A stretch of DNA of 64,000 nucleotides, from sequence record PP695294.1; one strand, given 5' to 3'. Below, piece after piece: positions 29,092 to 41,081 of the stretch. The stretch's first letter is position 1, and every line of letters starts with the position of its first letter. The notes beneath the pieces are model-generated. The model had not been told where the DNA came from. It saw only the letters and a program-made list of their open reading frames with translations, and searched no databases. The position numbers and the translations under genes are program-made.

Positions 29092-29146
29092 AAATAAATA
29101 AAAGGTACCTACCTCCCCGAAGGGAGGTAGGGCCTTTATTTTCTTT
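29092..29146. terminator. Bidirectional intrinsic terminator
   Basis: CCTACCTCCC-CGAA-GGGAGGTAGG flanked by A and T tracts, between convergent genes. Confidence 0.85.
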
Positions 29147-29148
29147 GC

Positions 29149-29820
29149 TTACATGCCGAGTGACTCGGACAATGTTTTTAATCCAGTGTAATCGCGCTTT
29201 TCAGCCAACTCACGGATTTGGCGTTTGTTATCTGCCATTGCTGAGTGCAACACTTGGTCACGTGCAACAATAGCGGCCAACAACGCTTTACATTGGTCTA
29301 CTGTAAACGGACTGTGCTTAGTATTCAGCGTATCGAGCCAGTATTCTGGTGCGGTATCCGCCTGAATATATTGACCGAGGATGGTACGCGACGATTCATC
29401 GGCTTGAAAGTGACTACCTTCAAACTCGATATAACCATGGCGCTCATCTTCGTAGCGGTGGTCGAGTTCCAACAGCATCTTCTGCACGTCTTCGTAAATG
29501 TAACGTGCGGTAGATTTCAGATTCCCGCGAATTTCGTCGAGGTCAATCTCCAGCACATTAGCAATAAACTCTTTCGTGCGTTTCAATGTGAAGTTAGCTT
29601 CAATCTCCGACATCTCATACAGCTTCATGCGTGCCAGGGCTTCTTTATCAGACATCCCTTCGATGAGATGGTAATGGAGTAATGCACAAAATCCGGTACG
29701 ACCCTGATCCTGCGCACCGATTCGTTCCATGAAATTACCGTGACGATCAATCGGCAAATCACGCTGGAAATAACGGGCGCGGATCTCTTCGTTCGTTAAG
29801 CTTTTGTCAGTAACAGACAT
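29149..29820 (-). CDS. DUF4376-like tail-fibre-associated protein
   Basis: C-terminal IEFEGSHFQADESSR..YWLDTLN..FTVDQCKALLAAI resembles DUF4376. Confidence 0.65.
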   Translation of the reverse strand: MSVTDKSLTNEEIRARYFQRDLPIDRHGNFMERIGAQDQGRTGFCALLHYHLIEGMSDKEALARMKLYEMSEIEANFTLKRTKEFIANVLEIDLDEIRGNLKSTARYIYEDVQKMLLELDHRYEDERHGYIEFEGSHFQADESSRTILGQYIQADTAPEYWLDTLNTKHSPFTVDQCKALLAAIVARDQVLHSAMADNKRQIRELAEKRDYTGLKTLSESLGM

Positions 29821-30362
29821 TCGTCCTCCTCAATCAGGCCAAGTTCTAACAACAAACCGAAGTCCAGCATCTGGAAGTCCTGATCGAGGTTACCGGCCCA
29901 CAACAGAGAAATGTTGTGTTGCTCTTCTTCTTCCAACTGCGGGAGCAGGTGTTCTTCGAAGATTTGACGCTCTGTGTAATAAGCGTCAACCGGGTTATTG
30001 GAGCGTAAGTTACGAATACGCATCCGCGGGAATGACAAGCCCAATGCCACTAAACTTTCAGGACTGGCTTCATCAATAGAGTGACGTAGCAGTTCGATTT
30101 TGTGGCGTGGGTATGCAAGCAGTCGCTTCTCAAAGCCAGGGTTGCGCTTTTCGATTTCCGCGACAGACTCGTGTCCTTTCTCAACGCAGTAGACCGGGAT
30201 CATCACATTCAGCCCGTATTTAATCAACAGGCTTTGGATTTCATCAGTGAAGTCTTCCCCTGCCACAATTGCGTGCACATTGTACAGCTTGCTTTTGCGC
30301 AGGAAGCGATCGACCAAGTGCAGTTTACGCTTCGTAAAATTGTGAATCAGTATTGACTTCAT
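29796..30362 (-). CDS. Hypothetical protein of the radical SAM module
   Basis: GGAG RBS before ATG 30362; overlaps both neighbours. Confidence 0.75.
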   Translation of the reverse strand: MKSILIHNFTKRKLHLVDRFLRKSKLYNVHAIVAGEDFTDEIQSLLIKYGLNVMIPVYCVEKGHESVAEIEKRNPGFEKRLLAYPRHKIELLRHSIDEASPESLVALGLSFPRMRIRNLRSNNPVDAYYTERQIFEEHLLPQLEEEEQHNISLLWAGNLDQDFQMLDFGLLLELGLIEEDECLLLTKA

Positions 30363-31653
30363 TCTGGGCTCCGTTTTGTAATTTTTCTGCTTCGGCACGT
30401 TGGCGTACACAACGTGAACAATAGCACATGGATTTATCATGCAAATCTGATGCGCGAGTCGTACCAGTTTTCTGATACCAATATTCCGCCGCCATCAGCT
30501 TCGCAGTAGTCCAACCACACTGACGACGCTCGGCGTGATACGCTTTACGGTCTTCCAGTGTACCTTCACCGTTTTCGTACGATGCTGCTGCGCAGCTACC
30601 GCAGCTGTGTTTCATCGGACACCCTAAACAGGTTTCTGGGTAGTTGGTGTACTGCGTTTGAATCTCTTCTAACAGCTTACCGCCGTCCAGGCTCACAAAC
30701 TCACGACCGACCAGTTCCGCTACAGCAGAGCGGGAAGTTACCGTGGACATGAAACGGTTACAACCGTAAATCTTGCGATCAAAGCCGAGACAGGTCATGT
30801 GCGTCAACGTACCGCAGTACGGTTTCAGGCGTTCTGGGTCGAGACGAACAGAGTCGTCGTGTAAGAGTTTGTCACGCCAATCCGGGTCCCAAGTTGCCAT
30901 AAAGTTCAGGCCATCCGGGATGATGTGTGTAATCGTGTTACGCGGGTTGGTGTGCAGACCCTTCTCAATCCAGTAGTCCATCACGTCCATCATCTGGTTC
31001 GCGATATCCAACGCCATATGGCGCGGCAGGATATCTTCGTACGTTACATTACCAGAAATGGTACCACCGCCGGACATGTCAATTAACGATTTCATGCTGG
31101 CGGCATAGTGCGGCAATGTATCGATCGTAAACGTCGCTTTTACGCCCAGTTCAGCGATGCCAACACTCTTCAGATAATTGTAACCGCGTACCGCAGCTTC
31201 GTACGACCCTTCACGCGTCGTGGTAAAGATACGATATTTGTCATGGACTTCAGGTAAACCATCGATGGAGACCCCAATAGACAGTTTGTCTTTCCAGCGC
31301 TCGATAATTTCTTTGTTCAGCGGACGGTCCAGAAGCGTACCGTTCGTGGAGATACTGAACATATACGGGCGATTGTGTTCTGCGCATAACTTCTCTGCGG
31401 TTTCAAAGGCCGCCAAAAGAAGTTTAGGCTGCATGAACGGCTCACCACCGATGATATCGATGATGACTTCAACGTTCGGGATATCTTTATCACGCTCGAA
31501 ACAAGCGTGGATAAAATCAATCACGTCTGCTACTTTGTTGTTACGCGGATATTTACGCTCGTAGCAGTATTCGCAGTCCAGGTTACATGACAAGTTAGTC
31601 ACAACCTGATATGTGCGTGGTGTGTACTGGATTTGCTGTTCGCTATTACTCAT
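30325..31653 (-). CDS. Radical SAM/SPASM-domain peptide maturase
   Basis: CNLDCEYC, GGEPF, STNG, SIDG; auxiliary C..DRKIYGC..CLGC-x5-C-x2-C..C plus CYCSRC. Confidence 0.92.
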   Translation of the reverse strand: MSNSEQQIQYTPRTYQVVTNLSCNLDCEYCYERKYPRNNKVADVIDFIHACFERDKDIPNVEVIIDIIGGEPFMQPKLLLAAFETAEKLCAEHNRPYMFSISTNGTLLDRPLNKEIIERWKDKLSIGVSIDGLPEVHDKYRIFTTTREGSYEAAVRGYNYLKSVGIAELGVKATFTIDTLPHYAASMKSLIDMSGGGTISGNVTYEDILPRHMALDIANQMMDVMDYWIEKGLHTNPRNTITHIIPDGLNFMATWDPDWRDKLLHDDSVRLDPERLKPYCGTLTHMTCLGFDRKIYGCNRFMSTVTSRSAVAELVGREFVSLDGGKLLEEIQTQYTNYPETCLGCPMKHSCGSCAAASYENGEGTLEDRKAYHAERRQCGWTTAKLMAAEYWYQKTGTTRASDLHDKSMCYCSRCVRQRAEAEKLQNGAQNEVNTDSQFYEA

Positions 31654-32560
31654 TGTTCGCCGCCCGTTTACGCTTAGCAGAAATTACACGGTTGATGTAG
31701 TTATACGCATCAACGCCGATAGAACGCGCCAGGCGATTACAGCCGACTTCCAATATCTCTGGGGCGTTCTGAATTTGCTCCTGCGTACCGTCGGCGTTAA
31801 GCCACAGCACTTCACTGCACGTGTTGCACTCGGTATCGAACATTTTACTGATCGCAAGCCCACATTCAGAATCGTTCTGCATGTTAAGGCGTTCGATATT
31901 GTCGAGTATTTTCCAATACCCGTACATGAAGTTCATGACGTGGTCTGGCGATAACGGTTTCGGCATCATCGCATCAAACAACAACGACACACCACCTGGA
32001 CGGTAATGATAGATTGCTCGGTGCAGCTCGATGAAATCTTCGTACCAGCGTTTATCGCCTAACTGGTCACGCGTCATCACACCCCAGGTGTAATAATTGT
32101 CCAGCTCGTACAGCACTTCCAGCGCTTCGTGATTACCACCGTTTACAAAGTTCATAAACGGACGTTCCGACTTCTTGTAGCCGTCAATGGACACAAAGAT
32201 AAGGTCGAACTGTTTCAGCAACGGCAGATGTGATTTACGCATCTTTAAACCGTTGGTGTACATGTGATGACGGAGGTTCGGATGAGACTCCTTCAACTCG
32301 TTCACGAAGTCTTCAATCTTACGCTGCGCTAACAGCGGCTCACCGCCCGTCCAATGAATCTCACCGATATCCGGATTCTTCTCTAAAATCGAGAGAATCT
32401 CTTCACGTTGAAACTCACGAGAAGTATCTTCTCTATCCATGTAATAAGCCCCTCCACAGAAGCTACAGTCTAAGTTACACTTAGAAGTTGCGACAACCGA
32501 CAGAATTGACGGTTTGTCGTACAGTTCAGACGAGATCCTGGATTCTACTTGATCTGTCAT
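31646..32560 (-). CDS. Second radical SAM enzyme (short, Twitch-like C-terminus)
   Basis: CNLDCSFC, GGEPLL, YTNG, SIDG; C-terminal CNTC..ADG..GC; GGAG RBS before ATG 32560. Confidence 0.88.
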   Translation of the reverse strand: MTDQVESRISSELYDKPSILSVVATSKCNLDCSFCGGAYYMDREDTSREFQREEILSILEKNPDIGEIHWTGGEPLLAQRKIEDFVNELKESHPNLRHHMYTNGLKMRKSHLPLLKQFDLIFVSIDGYKKSERPFMNFVNGGNHEALEVLYELDNYYTWGVMTRDQLGDKRWYEDFIELHRAIYHYRPGGVSLLFDAMMPKPLSPDHVMNFMYGYWKILDNIERLNMQNDSECGLAISKMFDTECNTCSEVLWLNADGTQEQIQNAPEILEVGCNRLARSIGVDAYNYINRVISAKRKRAANNE

Positions 32561-32582
32561 TGCAGGTTGCTCCAGTATATTT

Positions 32583-33470
32583 TTAAATATAATCAATGGC
32601 GAATAAAGGATCTTCGTCTACGTTAGCGCCAGGCACCAGTAACATCGGGTCGTGATAGGCAGCTAAAATTTTGTTCAGGTCGGCGTGTCTTTCGTTCAGA
32701 CGTTTCAAATCGGCCAACGTTACCGAACGACCACGAATCTCAGAAACAGCTTCTGCTTCTTCTTTCGTTAAATCCACCTTCGTTAAGAGGAAACTTACCA
32801 GCTTACTCAAATCCGCTTCTGTCGCCGGGTAATCCCCATATCGAGTTTGAACCAGGTGTTGCATCCACGGCTTACGAATACGTTTGGTGATTTCAAAATC
32901 GTCAGTCAGCGCATACCAGACAGAACGCTTTTTATCCCACACGAACTTATAGCTATACGCCATCATGTCCGCTAAACGGGTGATGCCGAGTTCTTTATAC
33001 CCCTCGATATCGATGTATGGTTCGGTGTCGAAATACGTTTCCGTATCGGCAGGTACCAGTACAAAGTAGTAAGGGAACGAGCCCAGATAGTCCGGACTCC
33101 ACCAACGGCGCGCCATCGGTTTTGCTTCAAGTTCGTCAAACGGTGTAAACATCAGTTCTAAATCGACGCTGTTGTTCAAAATCCCTTCACTGAAGAAATA
33201 CTTACCGTCGACTAACACGCCACGAGAGTTACCATCGCCGTTAAAGATAACGATGGCCTCTGCAACCATATCACGGATCTTAAACGTATTTTCTACGGTG
33301 TAGTTCTTCTTGTCGGTCAAGAAGCGACCACGAACCTTTGGCCACTCACCAGGAATCTGTGCAATCAGTCTGACTTTGTCAGCGAGATGTGCACGCACCG
33401 AATCTGGGGAAGATAGATGCAGCGGGTGGTTGAATGTGGTTTTATACGCAAGATGCAAATCGTTTTTCAT
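32583..33470 (-). CDS. Hypothetical protein of the radical SAM module
   Basis: 295 aa with GGAG RBS, between the Cys-rich peptides and the radical SAM genes. Confidence 0.8.
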   Translation of the reverse strand: MKNDLHLAYKTTFNHPLHLSSPDSVRAHLADKVRLIAQIPGEWPKVRGRFLTDKKNYTVENTFKIRDMVAEAIVIFNGDGNSRGVLVDGKYFFSEGILNNSVDLELMFTPFDELEAKPMARRWWSPDYLGSFPYYFVLVPADTETYFDTEPYIDIEGYKELGITRLADMMAYSYKFVWDKKRSVWYALTDDFEITKRIRKPWMQHLVQTRYGDYPATEADLSKLVSFLLTKVDLTKEEAEAVSEIRGRSVTLADLKRLNERHADLNKILAAYHDPMLLVPGANVDEDPLFAIDYI

Positions 33471-33492
33471 TTAATACTCCGAACGTTTTCTG

Positions 33493-33699
33493 TTATCGAT
33501 TCCCCGCTCCACGGCTACAGCTTCCGCTGCAGGACCAGCTACACCCACCATTACAGTTATAGTGAGAAAGCGGTAAGCCAGCCAGGTTATTTGTGGTCGA
33601 CACGGTGCCCTGGTTAGCGATATAGTTGTTTGCCTGTGCGGTTGTAATGTAACCTTCTGCCGTAACGAGACGGTTTCGAATAGTCTTGAGACTGATCAC
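33493..33699 (-). CDS. Cys-rich precursor-like peptide 3 (4 Cys)
   Basis: GGAGG RBS; leader like peptides 1 and 2; core NCNGGCSWSCSGSCS. Confidence 0.8.
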   Translation of the reverse strand: MISLKTIRNRLVTAEGYITTAQANNYIANQGTVSTTNNLAGLPLSHYNCNGGCSWSCSGSCSRGAGNR

Positions 33700-33714
33700 A
33701 TAAGCCTCCGTCAG

Positions 33715-34119
33715 TTAGGAGTTAGGACCTGAACAACCACCAGAGCACGCACCTGAGCAGTTTGCGGAGCAGGATTTACCACAACCCCCAGAACAGCTGC
33801 CTGTGCACGTGCCGCTACAACCACCAGAGCACGAAGAGCTACAGCCCGTGCAGCTGCTGCTACAGCCTGATACACAGTTTGCCGAACAAGTCGACCCACA
33901 ACCACCTGTCGCAGACCCTGTGCAGCCGCCAGAGCAACTTGAGCAGCTAAAAGAACACGTACCACCACAGTCGTAGTGCGAACGACCTTGACCTGCGAAC
34001 AAGTCAGCGTTATTCGTAGCTTTATTGCGAATGTAGTTTTGCACATTCGTGGTATTCTTTAGAGCGTTTGCATCGATCGTGTTTAATCGGTTATTCAGTT
34101 CTTTTAATCCAATTGCCAT
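33715..34119 (-). CDS. CxxxC-repeat Cys/Ser/Gly precursor-like peptide 2 (20 Cys)
   Basis: About 50-aa leader, then DCGGTCSFSC and a run of CxxxC repeats. Confidence 0.9.
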   Translation of the reverse strand: MAIGLKELNNRLNTIDANALKNTTNVQNYIRNKATNNADLFAGQGRSHYDCGGTCSFSCSSCSGGCTGSATGGCGSTCSANCVSGCSSSCTGCSSSCSGGCSGTCTGSCSGGCGKSCSANCSGACSGGCSGPNS

Positions 34120-34129
34120 TTAATCCCCC

Positions 34130-34522
34130 TTAGCGACCTGAACAGCCGCCGGAGCAGGCCCCGGAACAACTGGAAGAACATGAGCCACCGCAACCACCTG
34201 TGCAGTTACCGGTACAGCTACTACTGCAACCACCAGAACAACCAGAGCAACCAGAACAGTTACCGCCACACGTCGAAGAACAGCTACCGATACAAGAAGC
34301 AGAACAGCTTCCTGAACAGCTCGAACAGCCATGCGAGCAACCGTTAGAGCACGTCCAAGAACACGTCCCGCCGCAATCTAGCTGTGTTTTCGTCCAACCC
34401 CCAAATCGGTCTGCCGCGTTATGGGCTTTAGAGGCCACTTGCGCGTCGATACGGGGGCCTGTCGCCATGTTAGCTTCGACTATCTGGACGCGGTTTCTGA
34501 CGTCTTTAATAGATATCGCCAT
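34130..34522 (-). CDS. CxxxC-repeat Cys/Ser/Gly precursor-like peptide 1 (21 Cys)
   Basis: AAGGA RBS; about 49-aa leader, then DCGGTCSWTC and CxxxC repeats. Confidence 0.9.
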   Translation of the reverse strand: MAISIKDVRNRVQIVEANMATGPRIDAQVASKAHNAADRFGGWTKTQLDCGGTCSWTCSNGCSHGCSSCSGSCSASCIGSCSSTCGGNCSGCSGCSGGCSSSCTGNCTGGCGGSCSSSCSGACSGGCSGR

Positions 34523-34543: not shown

Positions 34544-34580
34544 ACGAGCGGACTATGTCCATAAACATAGTCCGGCTCGT
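34544..34580 (-). terminator. 15-bp bulged hairpin: terminator, attenuator or processing site ahead of the Cys-rich genes
   Basis: ACGAGCGGACTATGT/ACATAGTCC(G)GCTCGT; on the minus strand followed by TCTACTTTTT. Confidence 0.55.
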
Positions 34581-34587
34581 AAACAAG

Positions 34588-35790
34588 TTACTTAGTACCC
34601 GCTTCAGCTTGAACATCGTCGCGCGAGGTGAGGTTGTTGTTAACGTGAACAGCAGCCTGCACAACACCGCCATACTGTTTATGGAGGTAATTCGGGTGTG
34701 GGTTATCCGCAGCCGCATGGTTCGCCAGATTCTGGTTTGCCTGCGAAATTGCGTTGGTGTTGTTTACAACCTGAGTTTTAAGACTGTTGATTTGTCCTTG
34801 CAGGTTATCAATTTGCTGTTGGAAGTCTTTGCCCTGATTCTCAAGATCCGTGACACGCTGATTTGTTTCATTCAGCGCAGACTGAAGATCGTTAACCTTC
34901 TTCTGTAATTGCAACACCAGAGAATTAAGGTTAGCTAATGCTAACGACATTTTCTGGTAATTTTGAGCAACTACATTAAGCTGGTCGTTCCACGCGGCTA
35001 ACGAAGCCACAACTGCATCGATGCGTTGCCCCAACGCCGTGTCTGCTGCTCTTAAGTCGCCGATATCTTTGATAGTGGCGTCAATGGCAGTCTGTACACT
35101 TTGAATCAGGGCACGAATCTCCGTCTCCGTCAGGCCATTAACCTGATGAATGTCGAGATTGTGTACGTTACCTTCGGCGTTGATGTGTGTATTTAAGGCG
35201 TCGAGGAAGTCGTTTCTCAGACCGTCCAGAATACCTTTAATTTCTTCCAGCTGTACTGCAGAGCCGGAGTTAATCGCATCTTTAATCCCCGCGAGTACGG
35301 TAATGATATACTCAAAACCGTAGATATCGCCAAGGTCTTTATACGTCGGGGCGGACGGGAACGTATCGGGTACGTTTCGAAGATCCTTGAAGTCCACCAC
35401 ACGGTCTTCAATTTTCAGCGACGCAATCGCTTGTCGGATGCCTTCGACGTTCGCGGACTGAAAACCACCAACGACTTGCGCAGAGACTTCGATATCAGTA
35501 GGAATGGCCGAGTTAGTTACCACCACACCCATGACCACTTCGCGGTTCTTGGTCATTTTCTGATATGCAGTATGTGCAAAAATCAGTTCGTAGTCTGTGC
35601 CGCGTTTGTACGGGTAGACACCTGGTTTATTCGCAGCTGCCAAGCGGAAGGTATCCGCGTAGAAAGCTCCGTCAGGAAAAGCAAAAGCCCGGTTAACTTT
35701 ACCAGAACCTAACGTAATACGCCGTGTAACGGCGTTCGACGTTAATGTCCCGGTAAGGTCGAGCGGGTACTGATGAATGATTTCGGCCAT
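34588..35790 (-). CDS. phiKZ gp131-like tail-fibre protein with long coiled coil
   Basis: YPLDLTG..FY..GTDY N-domain; heptads; C-terminal H...NPHPNY motif; AGGAG RBS before ATG 35790. Confidence 0.75.
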   Translation of the reverse strand: MAEIIHQYPLDLTGTLTSNAVTRRITLGSGKVNRAFAFPDGAFYADTFRLAAANKPGVYPYKRGTDYELIFAHTAYQKMTKNREVVMGVVVTNSAIPTDIEVSAQVVGGFQSANVEGIRQAIASLKIEDRVVDFKDLRNVPDTFPSAPTYKDLGDIYGFEYIITVLAGIKDAINSGSAVQLEEIKGILDGLRNDFLDALNTHINAEGNVHNLDIHQVNGLTETEIRALIQSVQTAIDATIKDIGDLRAADTALGQRIDAVVASLAAWNDQLNVVAQNYQKMSLALANLNSLVLQLQKKVNDLQSALNETNQRVTDLENQGKDFQQQIDNLQGQINSLKTQVVNNTNAISQANQNLANHAAADNPHPNYLHKQYGGVVQAAVHVNNNLTSRDDVQAEAGTK

Positions 35791-35837
35791 TGCCAAACTC
35801 CTTTGATTGGGGCTTCCTTGCCCCATAGCGCTATCTG

Positions 35838-38800
35838 TTAGGTACGGAACATAAGATTGACCTGGATAATATCAGGCTGTTGACGTCCTCTCTCGTTCAC
35901 CCAATCGTGCGCAATCGTTAACGTAAGATCATCGCCATCCCACGCCACGATCGGTGGTGGGAATAAACCCTGAGCGCCCGTGGTAACAACCGGGATTGCA
36001 CCTGTCACATTCGTAAACGTGTAGCTACGACTGTTCAGAACAACTGGTGTGCCGTTGGTCTCTCCCGGCTGTGGTAAGATTTGAATCTTACTATCCGAAA
36101 GATCGGTGGCGATTGGTAGACCCCCAGCGTCCGTGAAAAGCCAAGAGCAAATATGCTGGTTAGCTGTTTCGAGCGCTGAAGAACTTACCGCCGCGACAAA
36201 TGTAAAGGTGCACGGCACGCCTGCTGGCAGAGAGTGCTGTTTGTGGTGCACGGTATGTGGTGACGGCAATAACACTTCTGGATTTTCGTCAATGTTAACA
36301 TCCGTACCTTCCGCCTCGACGTTGTAGAAAAAGCCATCCACCGCCTCCCATGGGGCAACGTGGACATTAAAGGTCGTTTCTACTCCCGGTGTACCTGGGA
36401 CGATGAATTTACTTTGCACCACCACCATCAAGTTCGTTGAGGTCGGAGAGAAAGCGGGCGTTGGAATACCTACCCACTCCATTCCCAACGATGTCGCTTC
36501 ACTGTTCTCGTCGGCCGTTACCGTCGCAATTGTTGTAGGATGTTTCCAAAACGCCCCCGACTTGTTTGCCTGAGTAAACGCCGGCAAAGTTTTCAAGCCT
36601 TCGAAACGTTTGGACACCATCGCTTTACCGCGACGCTGTGCGTCAGATACGGTATAAAGCAACTGACTATCCAGATAGCCTTTCGTAGCATCGACTGACA
36701 AAGGACCCATCGCTTCTTTACGCAATGGTGCCAGTCTGCCCGTTGCTGCATCCCTTCCCACTTCCACATCATGCTTATTCTCAACCGCCGCGTGTTCCAA
36801 CAGCTGTTTTACCGCCCCCAATCGCTTAGCATGGTCGACGTTAGTCTCGACGACTCGCGACGAGCCCGTTTTAACATACCCGATGTAGAGTTCCGTTTCA
36901 GTGTCTGGATGTTGAACCACGTCCATTACGTACTTCGGTGTACCATTTTCTACCTTAGCGTGCAGGTAGAATGTCCGGTTCTGATGGTTTGTTGGAAACG
37001 CTGCGCTGAGGTCAATATACCACGTAGGCAGCTTATAAGTGCTCGAGCCGAAACGCAGGTTAACTTCCTCAGTCACATATACCAGCCAACCTTCGGCTGT
37101 TTCCACACCGGCGATAACAACAGTCTCAGTCGCCCCACCGAAACTCGGACGTGCAACAAAATCACTCGACGACATTGCGATACCACCACAATAGACGTAG
37201 TCGAGAGATGAGTTGTGTAGCATCACCTGATCACGATGAGCCAGATAAGCTGGACTGACTGGAGTGTGTGTCGGTGCCATACGTCCAACGCCGTGTGGTG
37301 CAGAAGAACGCGTCCAGGTACCATTAGACAGCGTAAGACCGACACCGTAGTTAAGCGCACCCAAGTCGCCAATTTGGCGCAAGGTTAACGTGTGTGGAAG
37401 ATACAACCCGAACTGCGTACCATCTACCGACACCATGGTAGGTTGTCCCGGCCGGCGTGTTTTTCCTCCCGTTATCTCTCCCAACGTAGCATAGTTCAAG
37501 CCGTAGTCGAGGTTGTTATAGAAGTCAAACAGTGCCAATATCGCTGCGGGGAATGTTACCTGCCCGTTGCTGATTGTTGGTTTCAGTGTAAAGTAGTAGA
37601 TATCTAACAAGTTAACATTGTTCACAGTACGTGTACATGCCACTTGTGCTAATGTGAGCGGTGTGGCCGTTCCGATGCCGATGAACCAAACGGAAAACAA
37701 TGCCTTTCCTGCGTTATTTGCAGCAAGGATAAATTCCGAAGCATAACCATTCGCAGCGCCTGCCGGTGCTCCGTCGATGATCATCTGCTTCATCTTATCC
37801 CATTCAGCTTGTGACAGCGTCAATCGATCGGCGTGAATCGTGAAAGTGCCGGAAACGTTGTGGTAAGGGAATGTTTCTGGTCCTGTGCAATACCAGCCGT
37901 TTAACTCTGTACCAGGCGACGCCGGTGTAACAATGTGGCACATCTGCGACAGATTCTCATACGTGATAGAATCTACTACACGACGATTGTTAGTTGGGCC
38001 ATACCCCGCCTTACCTGAGTAAGTGGTGTTCGGATCAAACTCAACTTCAATTGCCAAGCGGGAACGCGGCTGTGACAACCAGATAAGTCTGGAATTCGCT
38101 CCCAGAGTCAGCGGATACGCCATGCCCAACTCGTAGATAGAACCACGACCTTGGTTTAACATTACCGCACTAAAACTTCTGGCAGTAAAGTTGTAGTCAC
38201 ACGACAGGTACTCGTACCAACTCACACCGTCATCTAACGTTGTAATCGTGACATAAGGCATTAGGTCGCGATCGCCCGCATGTCCTTGCGAAACGATATA
38301 CTTGTCTTGCGATGTTGCAAAGGTTCGGTTATTAGCTTGACCTTCGCCCCACTTCCGGCTCGGAATCCCAATCTCAGCGCCGCCGTTATAACGGACCGTG
38401 GTAAGATCGGCCACGATAGGGAATCGATCGGCACCTTCCAGCGTTACCGTCATTGAACTGCAATCAACAACAAAGCTTGACACCCATTGTTTAAAGTTAA
38501 TAGTTTGCCCTGTAGTAGAAGCAAACCAGACTGTTGGCGTTAAACCAACACGAAAGTTCAGCCCATCCACAGCAATCGCGTGATTACATTCCGGACCATG
38601 GACGAAATTTCGCGCACTATTCCACTTCGCCGATGCGTCTGCGTAGATCTGTGTTACTGGCGCTACCAACACATCTGTATCAGAACGTTTCTGACCCTGA
38701 CGCAAGTAGATATTATCTCCCGACGTTAACATCCCACCTGTTAACACATCCGCCACAAACGTGTTGCTACCACCCAGATTAAGTTCGTTGAGTGCGATGC

Positions 38801-41021
38801 TACGCATACTCACGAAATAGTCACCGGAGGTAAGGACAGTACGGAGCAGATAAACCCGATCGTTGCAAACGATCAAATCGTTTGTTGATGGATCGGCAAC
38901 CCATGGTGCGGTTGTAATCACACCGGCCGCGTTACCATTTCGGTAATCGCCCAAGTAAACTTTAACAACACGATGATGTTTTGCATGGTCAATGGTGCCG
39001 TCAAAGATGACCAGATAATACGCATAGTCACTGCCTAAGCAGATCATTGCATCTGTACCGGTAATCAGAATAGCAACCAGATTCACCCCAGGATACGCCG
39101 ACATTCCAGCGGGGTGATAACGTACGGACGTCTGCTGCATATTTTCCAGCGTATTGCTTGGCGACACATCAGCATAGGCGTAGTAGATAGCCCAGTCACC
39201 TGGCGGGTTCCCGTTGGAACCATTGCGCAACGAGTAAACCTTACCAGCCTCGTAACGCGCCAGTCCTTTTTGCCAGGTTTGGTTTTTGGTGTACCCTTCG
39301 TAGTTCCCCTGGACAGGTATAGGCAAGAAGTTATTGTTGCCGTACGATGATCCGCCAACGGTCCATGCTGGCAACAACGTAGCAATCTTGTCGTTCAGTG
39401 TACCGATCTTCTGTTCGAGCAAGAAACCCTGGCGGGCAGTAACCATCTTATCTGTTGTGGTGTCAATAGCATCCCACAGTTTAGCCAAACCTGTAACAGA
39501 CGTGGATGCGTACGGCACGTCATCGAGATCAGCAATGGTGTGGGTGTGTGTTGAGAGTGCCTTGCCTGATAGCACGGTGCGCAACGCATTAGTAACCGGT
39601 TTCTCCAGCGGCCCGGTATTGTTCATCTTCTCAATACCGAAATCCGACGCGGTTAAGGTTAAATGCATTTGACCGTTTTCGTCTAACACAAACCCTTTAC
39701 CATTGACCGTATACGTGTCGTCCACATATCCGTCGAGTTTGTTCTTCAAGTCAGTAACAGCTTTTTGGGAAATCGCTGTGGACGCCGCAGCGGACGCCGA
39801 AAGGTTAGTAATCGCAAACAAACCCTGCACAGTTGTGGTTGCTGCAGGCAGCTCCGCATTCATGTAAACTTTGTTTGTTTCTTTACCAGAGCCGTAAATC
39901 TTCAACGTGTCGCTGGACTTGAAGTAGGCGTTTGCTGGAAGTATCTTCACCGAGGTCAAGTACATCTTAACCATATCCGGTGTAACGAGATACACGCTGT
40001 TATACACAGGTGCAAGCACACCTGCATCATAAGCGCCCCACTTGTCACCCGCTTTACCCGAGTGAACCCAAAGCGTGTTCAGACCAGCACTGAACTCCGT
40101 AGCGATACCCGGTTCGTTGTTATCCTGGTCAGCTTTTAATACCAGCGGTTTTGTCGAGGTGATAATGAACTTATCACCTTTCATGCTGATAACGTGACCA
40201 GACGTTGTTTGGAACGTAATCGCGTCGTTATTCAGAACACGCATACGGCCCAGTAAATCACCCAGGGTATTATCCAGAAGCATGTCAACGTGTTTCTGTT
40301 GGGTGCCACTGGTAGACATTAACGTCACTAGCTCTGCCAGGGTACGTCCGAATGCCTTAGTCGCATCTACAGCTTTGCCGAGTACCGGGAGAGCGCCAAT
40401 GTCACCGCAGGTGTAACCATGTGCATTTTTAATCAGGTGGTGTTGATACATTTCGTCATCAAACACCTGCTTACCGTTCTGATAAATCAAATCGGTAACT
40501 TCGGCAAATGCCTCATCCAGTTCGTGGGCGCGCTCTAAAATACCCAGACGGATATCTTCCAACGCCTTTACGATTTCATCGCGAAGAATCGCTTCTTCGA
40601 GATCTTTTGGCGGGTCGATTGGCGAGATAATCGGCGGATATTTCATCAGCTCAGACCAATCGCAGTTGCGCGGGTCTTTCATATCCGTCTTAACCAGATA
40701 CTTGCCGATTTCAGAAGCAGGGATGCGATACTGTCGACCAACCGACAACAACTCGTATTCTACCTCTGTGGCGTTCAGCAGCATTATGCTGCCGTATATT
40801 GCATCGTTCTCAGCCTCGGCTAATTCCTGGAAGTAATGTCCTAAGAAATAATCAAGACCTTCTATTAACTTGCGTTTGGTTCCGGTTGTTTTATCGGTAA
40901 CGGTTAACGTTAACCCGATGCGATAGAACGGTGCTTCGACGGGAATGACCGTCGAATAACGGTTCGGGTAAGTAGCGGTACTGAGGGTACCGTTAAACTG
41001 CGCCGCATCTTCTCTCGGCAT
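35838..41021 (-). CDS. Large gp131-like tail-fibre/virion protein (1727 aa)
   Basis: APFY..L.EGLDY N-domain; fibre motifs ATTTVQG, HTHTIADL; AGGAG RBS before ATG 41021. Confidence 0.8.
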   Translation of the reverse strand: MPREDAAQFNGTLSTATYPNRYSTVIPVEAPFYRIGLTLTVTDKTTGTKRKLIEGLDYFLGHYFQELAEAENDAIYGSIMLLNATEVEYELLSVGRQYRIPASEIGKYLVKTDMKDPRNCDWSELMKYPPIISPIDPPKDLEEAILRDEIVKALEDIRLGILERAHELDEAFAEVTDLIYQNGKQVFDDEMYQHHLIKNAHGYTCGDIGALPVLGKAVDATKAFGRTLAELVTLMSTSGTQQKHVDMLLDNTLGDLLGRMRVLNNDAITFQTTSGHVISMKGDKFIITSTKPLVLKADQDNNEPGIATEFSAGLNTLWVHSGKAGDKWGAYDAGVLAPVYNSVYLVTPDMVKMYLTSVKILPANAYFKSSDTLKIYGSGKETNKVYMNAELPAATTTVQGLFAITNLSASAAASTAISQKAVTDLKNKLDGYVDDTYTVNGKGFVLDENGQMHLTLTASDFGIEKMNNTGPLEKPVTNALRTVLSGKALSTHTHTIADLDDVPYASTSVTGLAKLWDAIDTTTDKMVTARQGFLLEQKIGTLNDKIATLLPAWTVGGSSYGNNNFLPIPVQGNYEGYTKNQTWQKGLARYEAGKVYSLRNGSNGNPPGDWAIYYAYADVSPSNTLENMQQTSVRYHPAGMSAYPGVNLVAILITGTDAMICLGSDYAYYLVIFDGTIDHAKHHRVVKVYLGDYRNGNAAGVITTAPWVADPSTNDLIVCNDRVYLLRTVLTSGDYFVSMRSIALNELNLGGSNTFVADVLTGGMLTSGDNIYLRQGQKRSDTDVLVAPVTQIYADASAKWNSARNFVHGPECNHAIAVDGLNFRVGLTPTVWFASTTGQTINFKQWVSSFVVDCSSMTVTLEGADRFPIVADLTTVRYNGGAEIGIPSRKWGEGQANNRTFATSQDKYIVSQGHAGDRDLMPYVTITTLDDGVSWYEYLSCDYNFTARSFSAVMLNQGRGSIYELGMAYPLTLGANSRLIWLSQPRSRLAIEVEFDPNTTYSGKAGYGPTNNRRVVDSITYENLSQMCHIVTPASPGTELNGWYCTGPETFPYHNVSGTFTIHADRLTLSQAEWDKMKQMIIDGAPAGAANGYASEFILAANNAGKALFSVWFIGIGTATPLTLAQVACTRTVNNVNLLDIYYFTLKPTISNGQVTFPAAILALFDFYNNLDYGLNYATLGEITGGKTRRPGQPTMVSVDGTQFGLYLPHTLTLRQIGDLGALNYGVGLTLSNGTWTRSSAPHGVGRMAPTHTPVSPAYLAHRDQVMLHNSSLDYVYCGGIAMSSSDFVARPSFGGATETVVIAGVETAEGWLVYVTEEVNLRFGSSTYKLPTWYIDLSAAFPTNHQNRTFYLHAKVENGTPKYVMDVVQHPDTETELYIGYVKTGSSRVVETNVDHAKRLGAVKQLLEHAAVENKHDVEVGRDAATGRLAPLRKEAMGPLSVDATKGYLDSQLLYTVSDAQRRGKAMVSKRFEGLKTLPAFTQANKSGAFWKHPTTIATVTADENSEATSLGMEWVGIPTPAFSPTSTNLMVVVQSKFIVPGTPGVETTFNVHVAPWEAVDGFFYNVEAEGTDVNIDENPEVLLPSPHTVHHKQHSLPAGVPCTFTFVAAVSSSALETANQHICSWLFTDAGGLPIATDLSDSKIQILPQPGETNGTPVVLNSRSYTFTNVTGAIPVVTTGAQGLFPPPIVAWDGDDLTLTIAHDWVNERGRQQPDIIQVNLMFRT

Positions 41022-41040
41022 TGCAAACACTCCTAATCTG

Positions 41041-41081
41041 TAATAAAACGGAGACCGCCCTCCCAATAACGGAAGGGCGGT
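41041..41081 (-). terminator. Probable intrinsic terminator
   Basis: Minus strand ACCGCCCTTCC-loop-GGGAGGGCGGT followed by CTCCGTTTTATT. Confidence 0.55.

Follow-up and report, generated by a model that had tools for sequence, protein, structure and literature searches.

A candidate tail-fiber maturation module of radical SAM enzymes and cysteine-repeat proteins in SPN3US-like jumbo phages

Introduction

Thioether chemistry catalyzed by radical S-adenosylmethionine (SAM) enzymes has so far been found in small, secreted peptides that are made by ribosomes and modified post-translationally (RiPPs) and, since 2026, in one archaeal protein. PapB, the maturase of the freyrasin precursor PapA, forms repeated Cys-X3 thioether rings with an Asp or Glu of PapA, at position +4, as the acceptor, and CteB, the thioether synthase of thermocellin (SCIFF), has an N-terminal RiPP recognition element (RRE). 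A further system, the bacterial CXXX-repeat system (TIGR04115 maturases together with TIGR04114 or TIGR04117 targets), is defined bioinformatically, and no biochemical characterization of it was found in the literature. In Methanococcus voltae, CrpC, a radical SAM enzyme with a SPASM domain, installs ranthionine cross-links on the 28.8-kDa Cys-rich protein CrpA (PMC13692751, 2026). Here we analyze a locus that shares features with each of these systems and belongs to Salmonella phage 1252 (PP695294, 243 kb), an SPN3US-like jumbo phage. In a window of 64 kb (the whole stretch of DNA analyzed, to which the coordinates below refer), positions 29149-34522 contain eight tightly packed minus-strand genes, for three small proteins (pep1, pep2 and pep3, the first two with long Cys repeats), a 295-amino acid (aa) protein, two radical SAM enzymes (rSAM-2 and rSAM-1), a 188-aa protein and a DUF4376 protein. 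In SPN3US numbering, this module is gp161-gp166, and the region is 100% identical to phage 1252 and 98-99% identical to that of SPN3US and ~20 further Seoulvirus jumbo phages.

A sequence-only reading of this window had interpreted the locus as a RiPP-like system of the sactipeptide/ranthipeptide type. What stands of this proposal is that Cys-repeat polypeptides are encoded beside radical SAM enzymes, but the locus is better read as serving the maturation of a virion fiber than as a natural-product cluster. We consider it probable that this is a tail-fiber maturation module; its product is most likely a cross-linked fiber component rather than a secreted RiPP, because the same pair of radical SAM enzymes and the same 295-aa partner adjoin fiber proteins with the same junction motif and the same CxxxC tail.

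Results and discussion

Homology of the small proteins to tail fibers

Pep1, pep2 and pep3 share an N-terminal helix (MAISLKxxRxR), a sequence of the form N-N-A-D-x-L-x-G-x5-Y and a junction motif (C-x2-3-C-S-W-x-C), which in pep1 and pep2 is followed by a core of ~80 residues built of C-[S/T]-G-x units. A Cys-free N-terminus of 48-50 aa precedes the Cys core, in genes adjacent to those of radical SAM enzymes, which is the layout of RiPP precursors with a leader and a core. This leader/core picture, on which the sequence-only reading relied, does not survive comparison with other proteins because the N-terminal part is homologous to a tail-fiber repeat unit. A profile consisting of the last 34 leader residues and the first Cys motif, searched against 1.84 billion representative proteins, found 74 proteins, which fall into three groups. 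The first are small stand-alone proteins (60-210 aa), the second carry the motif close to their C-terminus (200-570 aa), and the third are large fiber proteins that match the leader part only, as tandem ANNANxLGGxxxSxY repeats, such as P0153 (with a Peptidase_S74 domain) and P0188 (with Gp34_trimer and Peptidase_S74 domains). The fibers with Peptidase_S74 thus share the repeat unit of the pep 'leader' but differ in having neither a Cys-repeat tail nor a radical SAM partner, their folding aid being an autoproteolytic intramolecular chaperone domain.

The second line of evidence comes from five distant loci (L009, L010, L012, L032 and L033; the L010 contig is identical to L011 and L031 and was counted once) that encode homologs of rSAM-1 with 32-39% identity (37-39% in L009, L010 and L012, 35% in L032 and 32% in L033). 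These loci span four kinds of context. One is an apparent prophage in a genome contig of Deferribacter abyssi, where a GpJ-like tail gene lies upstream; another is a contig of 213 kb on which a T4 gp13-like gene occurs; the third is an element that carries a lambda-J-like tail gene; and the fourth, judged from the order of its open reading frames (ORFs; baseplate-, sheath- and tube-like and tape-measure-sized), looks P2-like. In all five, the gene upstream of the radical SAM genes encodes a protein of 247-568 aa with tail-fiber features (collagen-like and fiber repeats, or matches to tail-fiber PHROGs), the C-terminus of which consists of NAxxLxGQxxxxYxC..CSW[ST]C followed by a long CxxxC repeat with 11-31 Cys. 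Downstream of these proteins, a second radical SAM enzyme is encoded in 5/5 loci and a homolog of the 295-aa protein in 4/5. The family of the window peptides, phrog_6085, which pep1 matches with E = 9e-41, also matches the C-termini of the 247-568-aa proteins, with alignments starting inside the leader, and the N-terminus of the L033 protein matches tail-fiber PHROGs.

Given that leader and tail alike are homologous to parts of fiber proteins, pep1-3 are stand-alone versions of a tail-fiber C-terminal module, and sequence comparison shows their 'leader' to be a canonical tail-fiber repeat unit. A fused variant exists at the pep3 position as well: P0119 (L132 5001-5633, in a 222-kb SPN3US-like contig) is a protein of 210 aa with a normal leader, a 4-Cys motif and a β-rich C-terminal domain of ~145 aa.

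These homologies weigh on the view that the system is a classical RiPP pathway, in which the N-terminal 50 residues would be removed as a leader and the modified cores, freed at lysis or kept inside the cell, would be bioactive (bacteriocin-like, as a signal or in host takeover). The leader-plus-core layout, which is the obvious argument for such a pathway, loses force once the 'leader' is a tail-fiber repeat unit and the same tail ends fiber proteins of 247-568 aa in several phage lineages. The three paralogs with their conserved N-terminus do resemble multi-precursor RiPP clusters, rSAM-1 resembles RiPP maturases and its bacterial relatives adjoin CxxxC peptides of 41-86 aa, a typical RiPP size, but pep3 can bear a folded C-terminal domain and the operon lies inside the tail-fiber gene block, in a position that is constant across five genera. 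Moreover, the operon lacks the further components that such a pathway would have: no protease or leader peptidase and no exporter were found among its proteins by Pfam, NCBIfam and PHROGs searches, nor was an immunity gene found, and none of the eight proteins has a Pfam or NCBIfam match to an RRE (PqqD-like), fused or discrete. The search for an RRE that the sequence-only reading suggested thus gave nothing, while its remarks that the operon has no protease or exporter and that the product is probably not a classical secreted bacteriocin agree with these results and with the fiber homology. We regard a classical RiPP pathway as quite unlikely.

Reading frame and cysteine repeats

The repeat regions of the pep genes are open in all three frames. 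The frame that contains the Cys repeats is identified as the coding frame by four features. Compared with ~80% identical relatives, the differences at codon positions 1/2/3 number 15/8/67 in pep1 and 13/10/71 in pep2 (synonymous to non-synonymous codon changes 57:16 and 64:15, respectively); Shine-Dalgarno sites (AAGGAAG, AAGGGGGA or ACGGAGG) precede the peptide starts; a conserved start and leader exist in the Cys frame only (Seoulvirus, Derbicusvirus CR5, Wellingtonvirus Kwan, Machinavirus Huxley and Erskinevirus Asesino); and the number of Cys residues in pep1 is 21 in all eight genomes compared, from these five named genera. The Cys frame of the pep genes is under purifying selection. The competing Val-rich ORF at 33711-34046 (-), annotated as SPN3US gp166, was rejected because it has no conserved start and because the third-position bias and the conserved leaders favor the Cys frame. 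Accordingly, in the SPN3US annotations (JN641803 and NC_027402), gp166 is an alternative frame of pep2, whereas pep1 and pep3 are missing. The annotations also conflict among related records (CR5, Kwan, Huxley, Asesino and pEa_SNUABM_29), some of which contain calls that overlap or lie on the opposite strand.

The CxxxC spacing is found in 17 of the 20 Cys intervals of pep1 and in 16 of the 19 of pep2, and the consensus repeat unit across the clade is C-[S/T]-G-[G/S/T]. The claim of three CxxxC-repeat peptides therefore holds for pep1 and pep2, whereas pep3, with 4 Cys here and only two or three in its CR5 and Kwan counterparts, is an abbreviated form and not a long repeat. The pattern is not a product of chance: a regular expression for the Cys repeat, run on all six frames of the window, matched pep1 and pep2 alone, and 274 kb of DNA of the related clade outside the peptide region yielded one stray match. 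With the model for Cys-rich repeat CXXX targets, TIGR04114, pep1, pep2 and pep3 score 19.6, 17.1 and 13.7 bits, respectively, below the cut-off of 20, with pep1 marginal. The cores of pep1-3 contain neither Asp nor Glu and hence offer no acceptors of the PapB type (Cys-X3-Asp/Glu).

The radical SAM enzymes

Both enzymes pass the cut-off of PF04055 (rSAM-2 with 58.7 bits) and rSAM-1 has the seven-Cys pattern of a SPASM domain, so the presence of a radical SAM pair that includes a SPASM-type enzyme is confirmed. The best family match of rSAM-1 is the CXXX-repeat maturase TIGR04115 (125.6 bits, E = 3e-36, cut-off 350), in two stretches, the better one covering residues 18-235. The second match is the PapB ranthipeptide maturase NF047865 (113.6 bits, E = 1e-32, cut-off 340), with a nearly full-length alignment (residues 22-357 of rSAM-1 against positions 12-319 of the 330 in the model). 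The family of CrpC, TIGR04463, gives 57.6 bits against a cut-off of 525. Because the curated cut-offs are missed, membership in TIGR04115, the PapB family or, for the peptides, TIGR04114 cannot be claimed, and the TIGR04114/TIGR04115 CXXX-repeat type named by the sequence-only reading stands as the closest resemblance.

In an alignment of 16 homologs, the Cys residues of the CX3CX2C motif of rSAM-1 (C23, C27 and C30) are present in at least 90% of the sequences, C280, C298, C342, C345, C351, C354 and C379 of the SPASM region are invariant and C288 is nearly so, which is the Cys pattern of a TIGR04115-type enzyme. A SPASM domain is not among the Pfam matches of rSAM-1, and its assignment is based on the conserved Cys pattern together with the near-full-length alignment to PapB. 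Since the CX3CX2C motif begins at residue 23, there is no space for an N-terminal RRE. The best sequence match of rSAM-1 in the Protein Data Bank (PDB) is CteB (5WGG/5WHY, E = 3e-10). Taken together, the sequence comparisons indicate that rSAM-1 is likely a Cys-modifying maturase. In rSAM-2, CX3CX2C and GGEPL motifs are present and, in the alignment, C248 and C274 near the C-terminus are invariant and C245 is found in most clade orthologs, a pattern that suggests a twitch-like auxiliary site; profile search found no specific family match for this enzyme. In L009, an rSAM-2 ortholog (26% identity over 286 aa, E = 5e-13) adjoins the rSAM-1 homolog.

The phage module therefore shares different features with each of the described systems. 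It resembles the bacterial CXXX-repeat system in the top hidden Markov model match of rSAM-1, the SPASM domain, the lack of an N-terminal RRE, the Cys at every fourth residue and the adjacency of the genes, but, apart from the scores below the cut-offs, it differs in adding a second radical SAM enzyme and a partner with an apparently novel fold, and in that its putative targets bear a fiber repeat unit or are whole fiber proteins, within tail modules. Compared with PapB/PapA, the phage core lacks acidic residues and the +4 position is occupied by the next Cys. CrpC and CrpA are similar in that the enzyme is a SPASM radical SAM protein, the substrate is a Cys-rich protein and not a short peptide, the N-terminus is common to paralogous substrates, and neither a protease nor the biological role is known; in contrast to rSAM-1, CrpC belongs to TIGR04463 and has an N-terminal RRE, and the repeats of CrpA are 17-residue units with C-X-X-Q/D in a cellular protein with no link to fibers. 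CteB is a SPASM thioether synthase and, by sequence, the closest relative with a solved structure, but the radical SAM core alone aligns with rSAM-1 (residues 22-179) and its RRE is absent from the phage enzyme.

Co-occurrence of the peptides and the enzymes

Orthologs of rSAM-1 with 63-100% identity are confined to the SPN3US-like clade, in which all 18 loci from IMG/VR retain the genes for pep1, pep2, gp165, rSAM-2, rSAM-1, gp162, gp161 and gp167, and pep3 is present in 9 of the 10 loci searched for it. Among the distant viral loci with a relative of rSAM-1 (22-37% identity), 17/21 contain a Cys-repeat ORF on the same strand at most 7 kb away. The co-occurrence of peptide and enzyme genes in related phages, which the sequence-only reading had set as a test of its proposal, is thus observed both within the clade and far beyond it, and an enzyme-substrate link between the radical SAM enzymes and the Cys-repeat proteins is strongly supported.

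Without such a link, the Cys-repeat proteins could have a structural or scaffold role and bind metals or Fe-S clusters or form disulfide bonds, and the radical SAM enzymes would have a different target, such as a nucleotide, a glycan or another fiber protein. With 21 Cys in ~80 residues, the Cys density is indeed metallothionein-like, metal binding is likewise suspected for CrpA by its authors (PMC13692751) and rSAM-2 has no specific family match. We nevertheless consider this explanation unlikely because the rSAM-1 family and the CxxxC tails travel together over unrelated phage backbones, at 22-39% identity, a pattern not easily accounted for unless enzyme and substrate are directly linked, and because the families that best match rSAM-1 are all maturases of Cys peptides.

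Several loci show variations on this arrangement. In L014 (3542-4453) and L029 (3543-4454), two IMG/VR loci with an rSAM-1 that is 83% identical, an extra full-length paralog of rSAM-2 is encoded between pep1 and pep2, which brings the number of radical SAM genes to three. The distant viral loci L042 (6911-12763) and L047 (6941-12592) encode a protein of 192-199 aa that ends in CQxxCQxxCQ repeats, and four large same-strand radical SAM genes flank its gene; the block in L042 comes after two proteins of >1000 aa, and the N-terminus of one of these looks fiber-like by eye. These blocks look like an elaboration of the arrangement described here. Relatives of rSAM-1 in cellular genomes (23-28% identity; L052-L056, L060, L063 and L068) adjoin CxxxC peptides of 41-113 aa, e.g. 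MDFLLPT...CKGCRGGCKGCDAGCEGC, with three tandem CxxC/CxxxC peptides in the archaeal locus L063. The short peptides beside the cellular relatives represent the uncharacterized bacterial CXXX-repeat system. The scan of bacterial genomes with degenerate patterns was saturated by generic SPASM enzymes, so that a handful of the 80 loci, those with short CxxxC peptides, were informative.

The accessory proteins

The AlphaFold2 model of the 295-aa protein has high confidence (pLDDT, the predicted value of the local distance difference test, 87.4, predicted template modeling score (pTM) 0.83), and a Foldseek search of the PDB and BFVD with this model found nothing beyond the protein's own ortholog and, in particular, no RRE, protease or chaperone fold. 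As modeled, the fold of this protein is novel. Given its homologs in the distant loci L009, L012, L032 and L033, the protein is, by sequence, a conserved partner of the radical SAM pair, distant phages included.

The other two accessory proteins are restricted to the SPN3US clade. The 188-aa protein, gp162, is present in 18/18 clade loci and absent from the distant ones; its AlphaFold2 model (pLDDT 88.7) predicts an α/β partial barrel with weak structural matches (E ≥ 1e-3, TM-score < 0.5) to TIM-barrel and Rossmann-like proteins, MbnB and viperin among them. The sequence contains no CX3CX2C motif, and a degenerate radical SAM-like or TIM-like fold is possible as judged from the model. The DUF4376 protein, gp161, scores 38.1 bits with PF14301 (cut-off 25) and matches phrog_2837, 'tail protein', with E = 4e-4; DUF4376 occurs also in phage tail proteins. 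A sequence search of the PDB found no match for this protein, and gave coiled-coil noise alone for gp167, which is encoded directly upstream of pep1.

Virion composition

Proteomics of SPN3US virions detected gp167-gp173 but not gp161-gp165, with an SC/M of 1.90 for gp167 (PMC5694885 Suppl. Table 1). The absence of gp161-gp165 is as expected of enzymes and assembly factors. Pep1-3 were beyond detection in these data because the deposited annotation lacks pep1 and pep3 and contains pep2 in the wrong frame.

That gp161-gp165 are not virion proteins also suits a transient role, in which the peptides would stay outside the virion as assembly scaffolds or chaperones for gp167-gp170, or as intracellular redox or anti-defense factors. 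The DUF4376 protein and the nearby gp157 gene, for which the RefSeq product name in SPN3US is 'tail assembly chaperone', point to assembly too. However, the fused versions found elsewhere form the C-terminal ends of fiber proteins and so imply a permanent structural element, which makes a transient role quite unlikely in our assessment.

A proposed maturation pathway

Under the preferred interpretation, tail-fiber maturation, the substrates would be pep1-3 as miniature fiber proteins, each with the N-terminal helix, one fiber repeat unit and the junction motif, and pep1 and pep2 with the Cys repeats in addition. The junction motif would serve as the recognition element, together with the shared N-terminal helix in the SPN3US clade, and rSAM-1 and rSAM-2 would act post-translationally on the Cys-repeat tail via 5'-deoxyadenosyl radical chemistry. 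By analogy with PapB, CteB and CrpC/CrpA, the likeliest product would be intramolecular thioether cross-links of the ranthionine type that form a ladder. With no RRE present, the 295-aa protein is probably the partner that presents the substrate, and gp162 and the DUF4376 protein may be clade-specific assembly factors. The resulting cross-linked, redox-insensitive rods would be incorporated in or on the peripheral baseplate and fiber apparatus (gp167-gp170). We infer the role of pep1-3 as substrates, the thioether chemistry, the function of the 295-aa protein and the incorporation in the virion from the comparisons described above.

Several observations weigh against this scheme. The evidence for the modification of pep1-3 and for their presence in the virion is indirect, the published SPN3US virion mass spectrometry being blind to them, and every curated family cut-off is missed, by rSAM-1 and by pep1-3 alike. 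The core, with its C-[S/T]-G-[G/S/T] units, lacks the Asp, Glu and Gln acceptors that PapB and CrpC use, so that neither the acceptor nor the reaction type follows from these precedents. In the Foldseek search, the 295-aa protein showed neither an RRE-like nor any other known fold, and the shared helix MAISLKxxRxR would suit the role of a classical RiPP leader just as well.

A bolder form of the same scheme, which we put forward tentatively and hold to be somewhat doubtful, is that unrelated phage lineages build a 'cysteine rod' cross-linked by radical SAM enzymes into their tail fibers, and that the rod of SPN3US-like phages consists of three mini-fiber chains that dock on gp167/gp168. Possibly, pep1, pep2 and pep3 would then form a 1:1:1 heterotrimer, with a role in adsorption or in the stability of the fiber in the environment.

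Operon layout and genomic context

The eight packed minus-strand genes and the bidirectional terminator described in the sequence-only reading were all confirmed by a check of ORFs and translations (Table 1). The genes are separated by gaps of 10-22 nt or overlap by 8-38 nt. The longest rSAM-2 ORF extends to 32596, with a TTG start.

Table 1. Features of the module and its immediate surroundings, in the direction of transcription
Feature	Position	Strand	Description
gp168	35838-41066	-	1742 aa, baseplate/tail-fiber candidate (ORF; literature on SPN3US gp168)
gp167	34588-35826	-	directly upstream of pep1; virion protein, long coiled coil; phrog_2163
conserved hairpin and T-run	34544-34580	-	between gp167 stop and pep1 start; minimum free energy -25.7 kcal/mol, z = -3.7
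pep1	34130-34522	-	130 aa; N-terminal helix, tail-fiber repeat unit NAADRFGGW..LD, CxxxC core, 21 Cys
pep2	33715-34119	-	134 aa; pep1-like architecture, NNADLFAGQ..HYD then CGGTCSF..., 20 Cys
pep3	33493-33699	-	68 aa, GTG start; leader and junction motif as in pep1/pep2, 4 Cys
295-aa accessory protein (SPN3US gp165)	32583-33470	-	phrog_8030
rSAM-2 (gp164)	31646-32560	-	PF04055; ATG start common to orthologs
rSAM-1 (gp163)	30325-31653	-	442 aa, radical SAM/SPASM
188-aa protein (gp162)	29796-30362	-	phrog_7988; longest ORF 214 aa
DUF4376 protein (gp161)	29149-29820	-	PF14301
bidirectional intrinsic-terminator-like hairpin	29108-29131	both	operon end; 10-bp stem, 7 GC pairs, T-runs on each strand

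The module is flanked on one side by the virion tail genes gp167-gp170 and on the other side by a block that includes genes named in RefSeq as endolysin and tail assembly chaperone. Among the tail genes, SPN3US gp168 encodes a protein that resembles phiKZ gp131 (PMC5105663; PMC5694885). The stem of the hairpin between gp167 and pep1 is preserved via compensatory changes across five genera, with the loop TATGG (TATGT in CR5); this element could be a terminator, an attenuator or a phage late-promoter element. A scan for sigma-70 promoters yielded fewer matches than expected from shuffled sequences, and SPN3US-type phages transcribe with phage-encoded RNA polymerases, so the scan says nothing about the promoters of the module.

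Several SPFM records (LR5359xx, H27-H30 among them) match the region as ~40 short pieces, with ~46% coverage and 99.5% identity, and their radical SAM proteins look truncated or scrambled (P0081-P0084), which suggests error-rich assemblies and not biology.

Conclusions

No description of a radical SAM/Cys-repeat module in SPN3US-like or other phages was found in the literature, consistent with the statement of the sequence-only reading that no such phage module was known to have been characterized biochemically. Radical SAM/SPASM maturation of Cys-rich polypeptides is known as such, and its putative application to phage tail-fiber proteins, across several lineages, is most likely new. For SPN3US, a genetic model phage, the annotation is corrected in that two genes were missing and one was in the wrong frame, and five 'hypothetical' genes that are kept in at least five named jumbo-phage genera gain a first functional context. 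The system is tractable because amber-mutant genetics exists for SPN3US, virion mass spectrometry has been published and the module is small enough to be co-expressed in Escherichia coli. If the proposed pathway is correct, it would provide the first case of a structural virion protein in which enzymes install a thioether ladder of the RiPP type; such maturation of a virion component would join RiPP enzymology to phage structural biology and would open a new route to stabilize or functionalize receptor-binding fibers.

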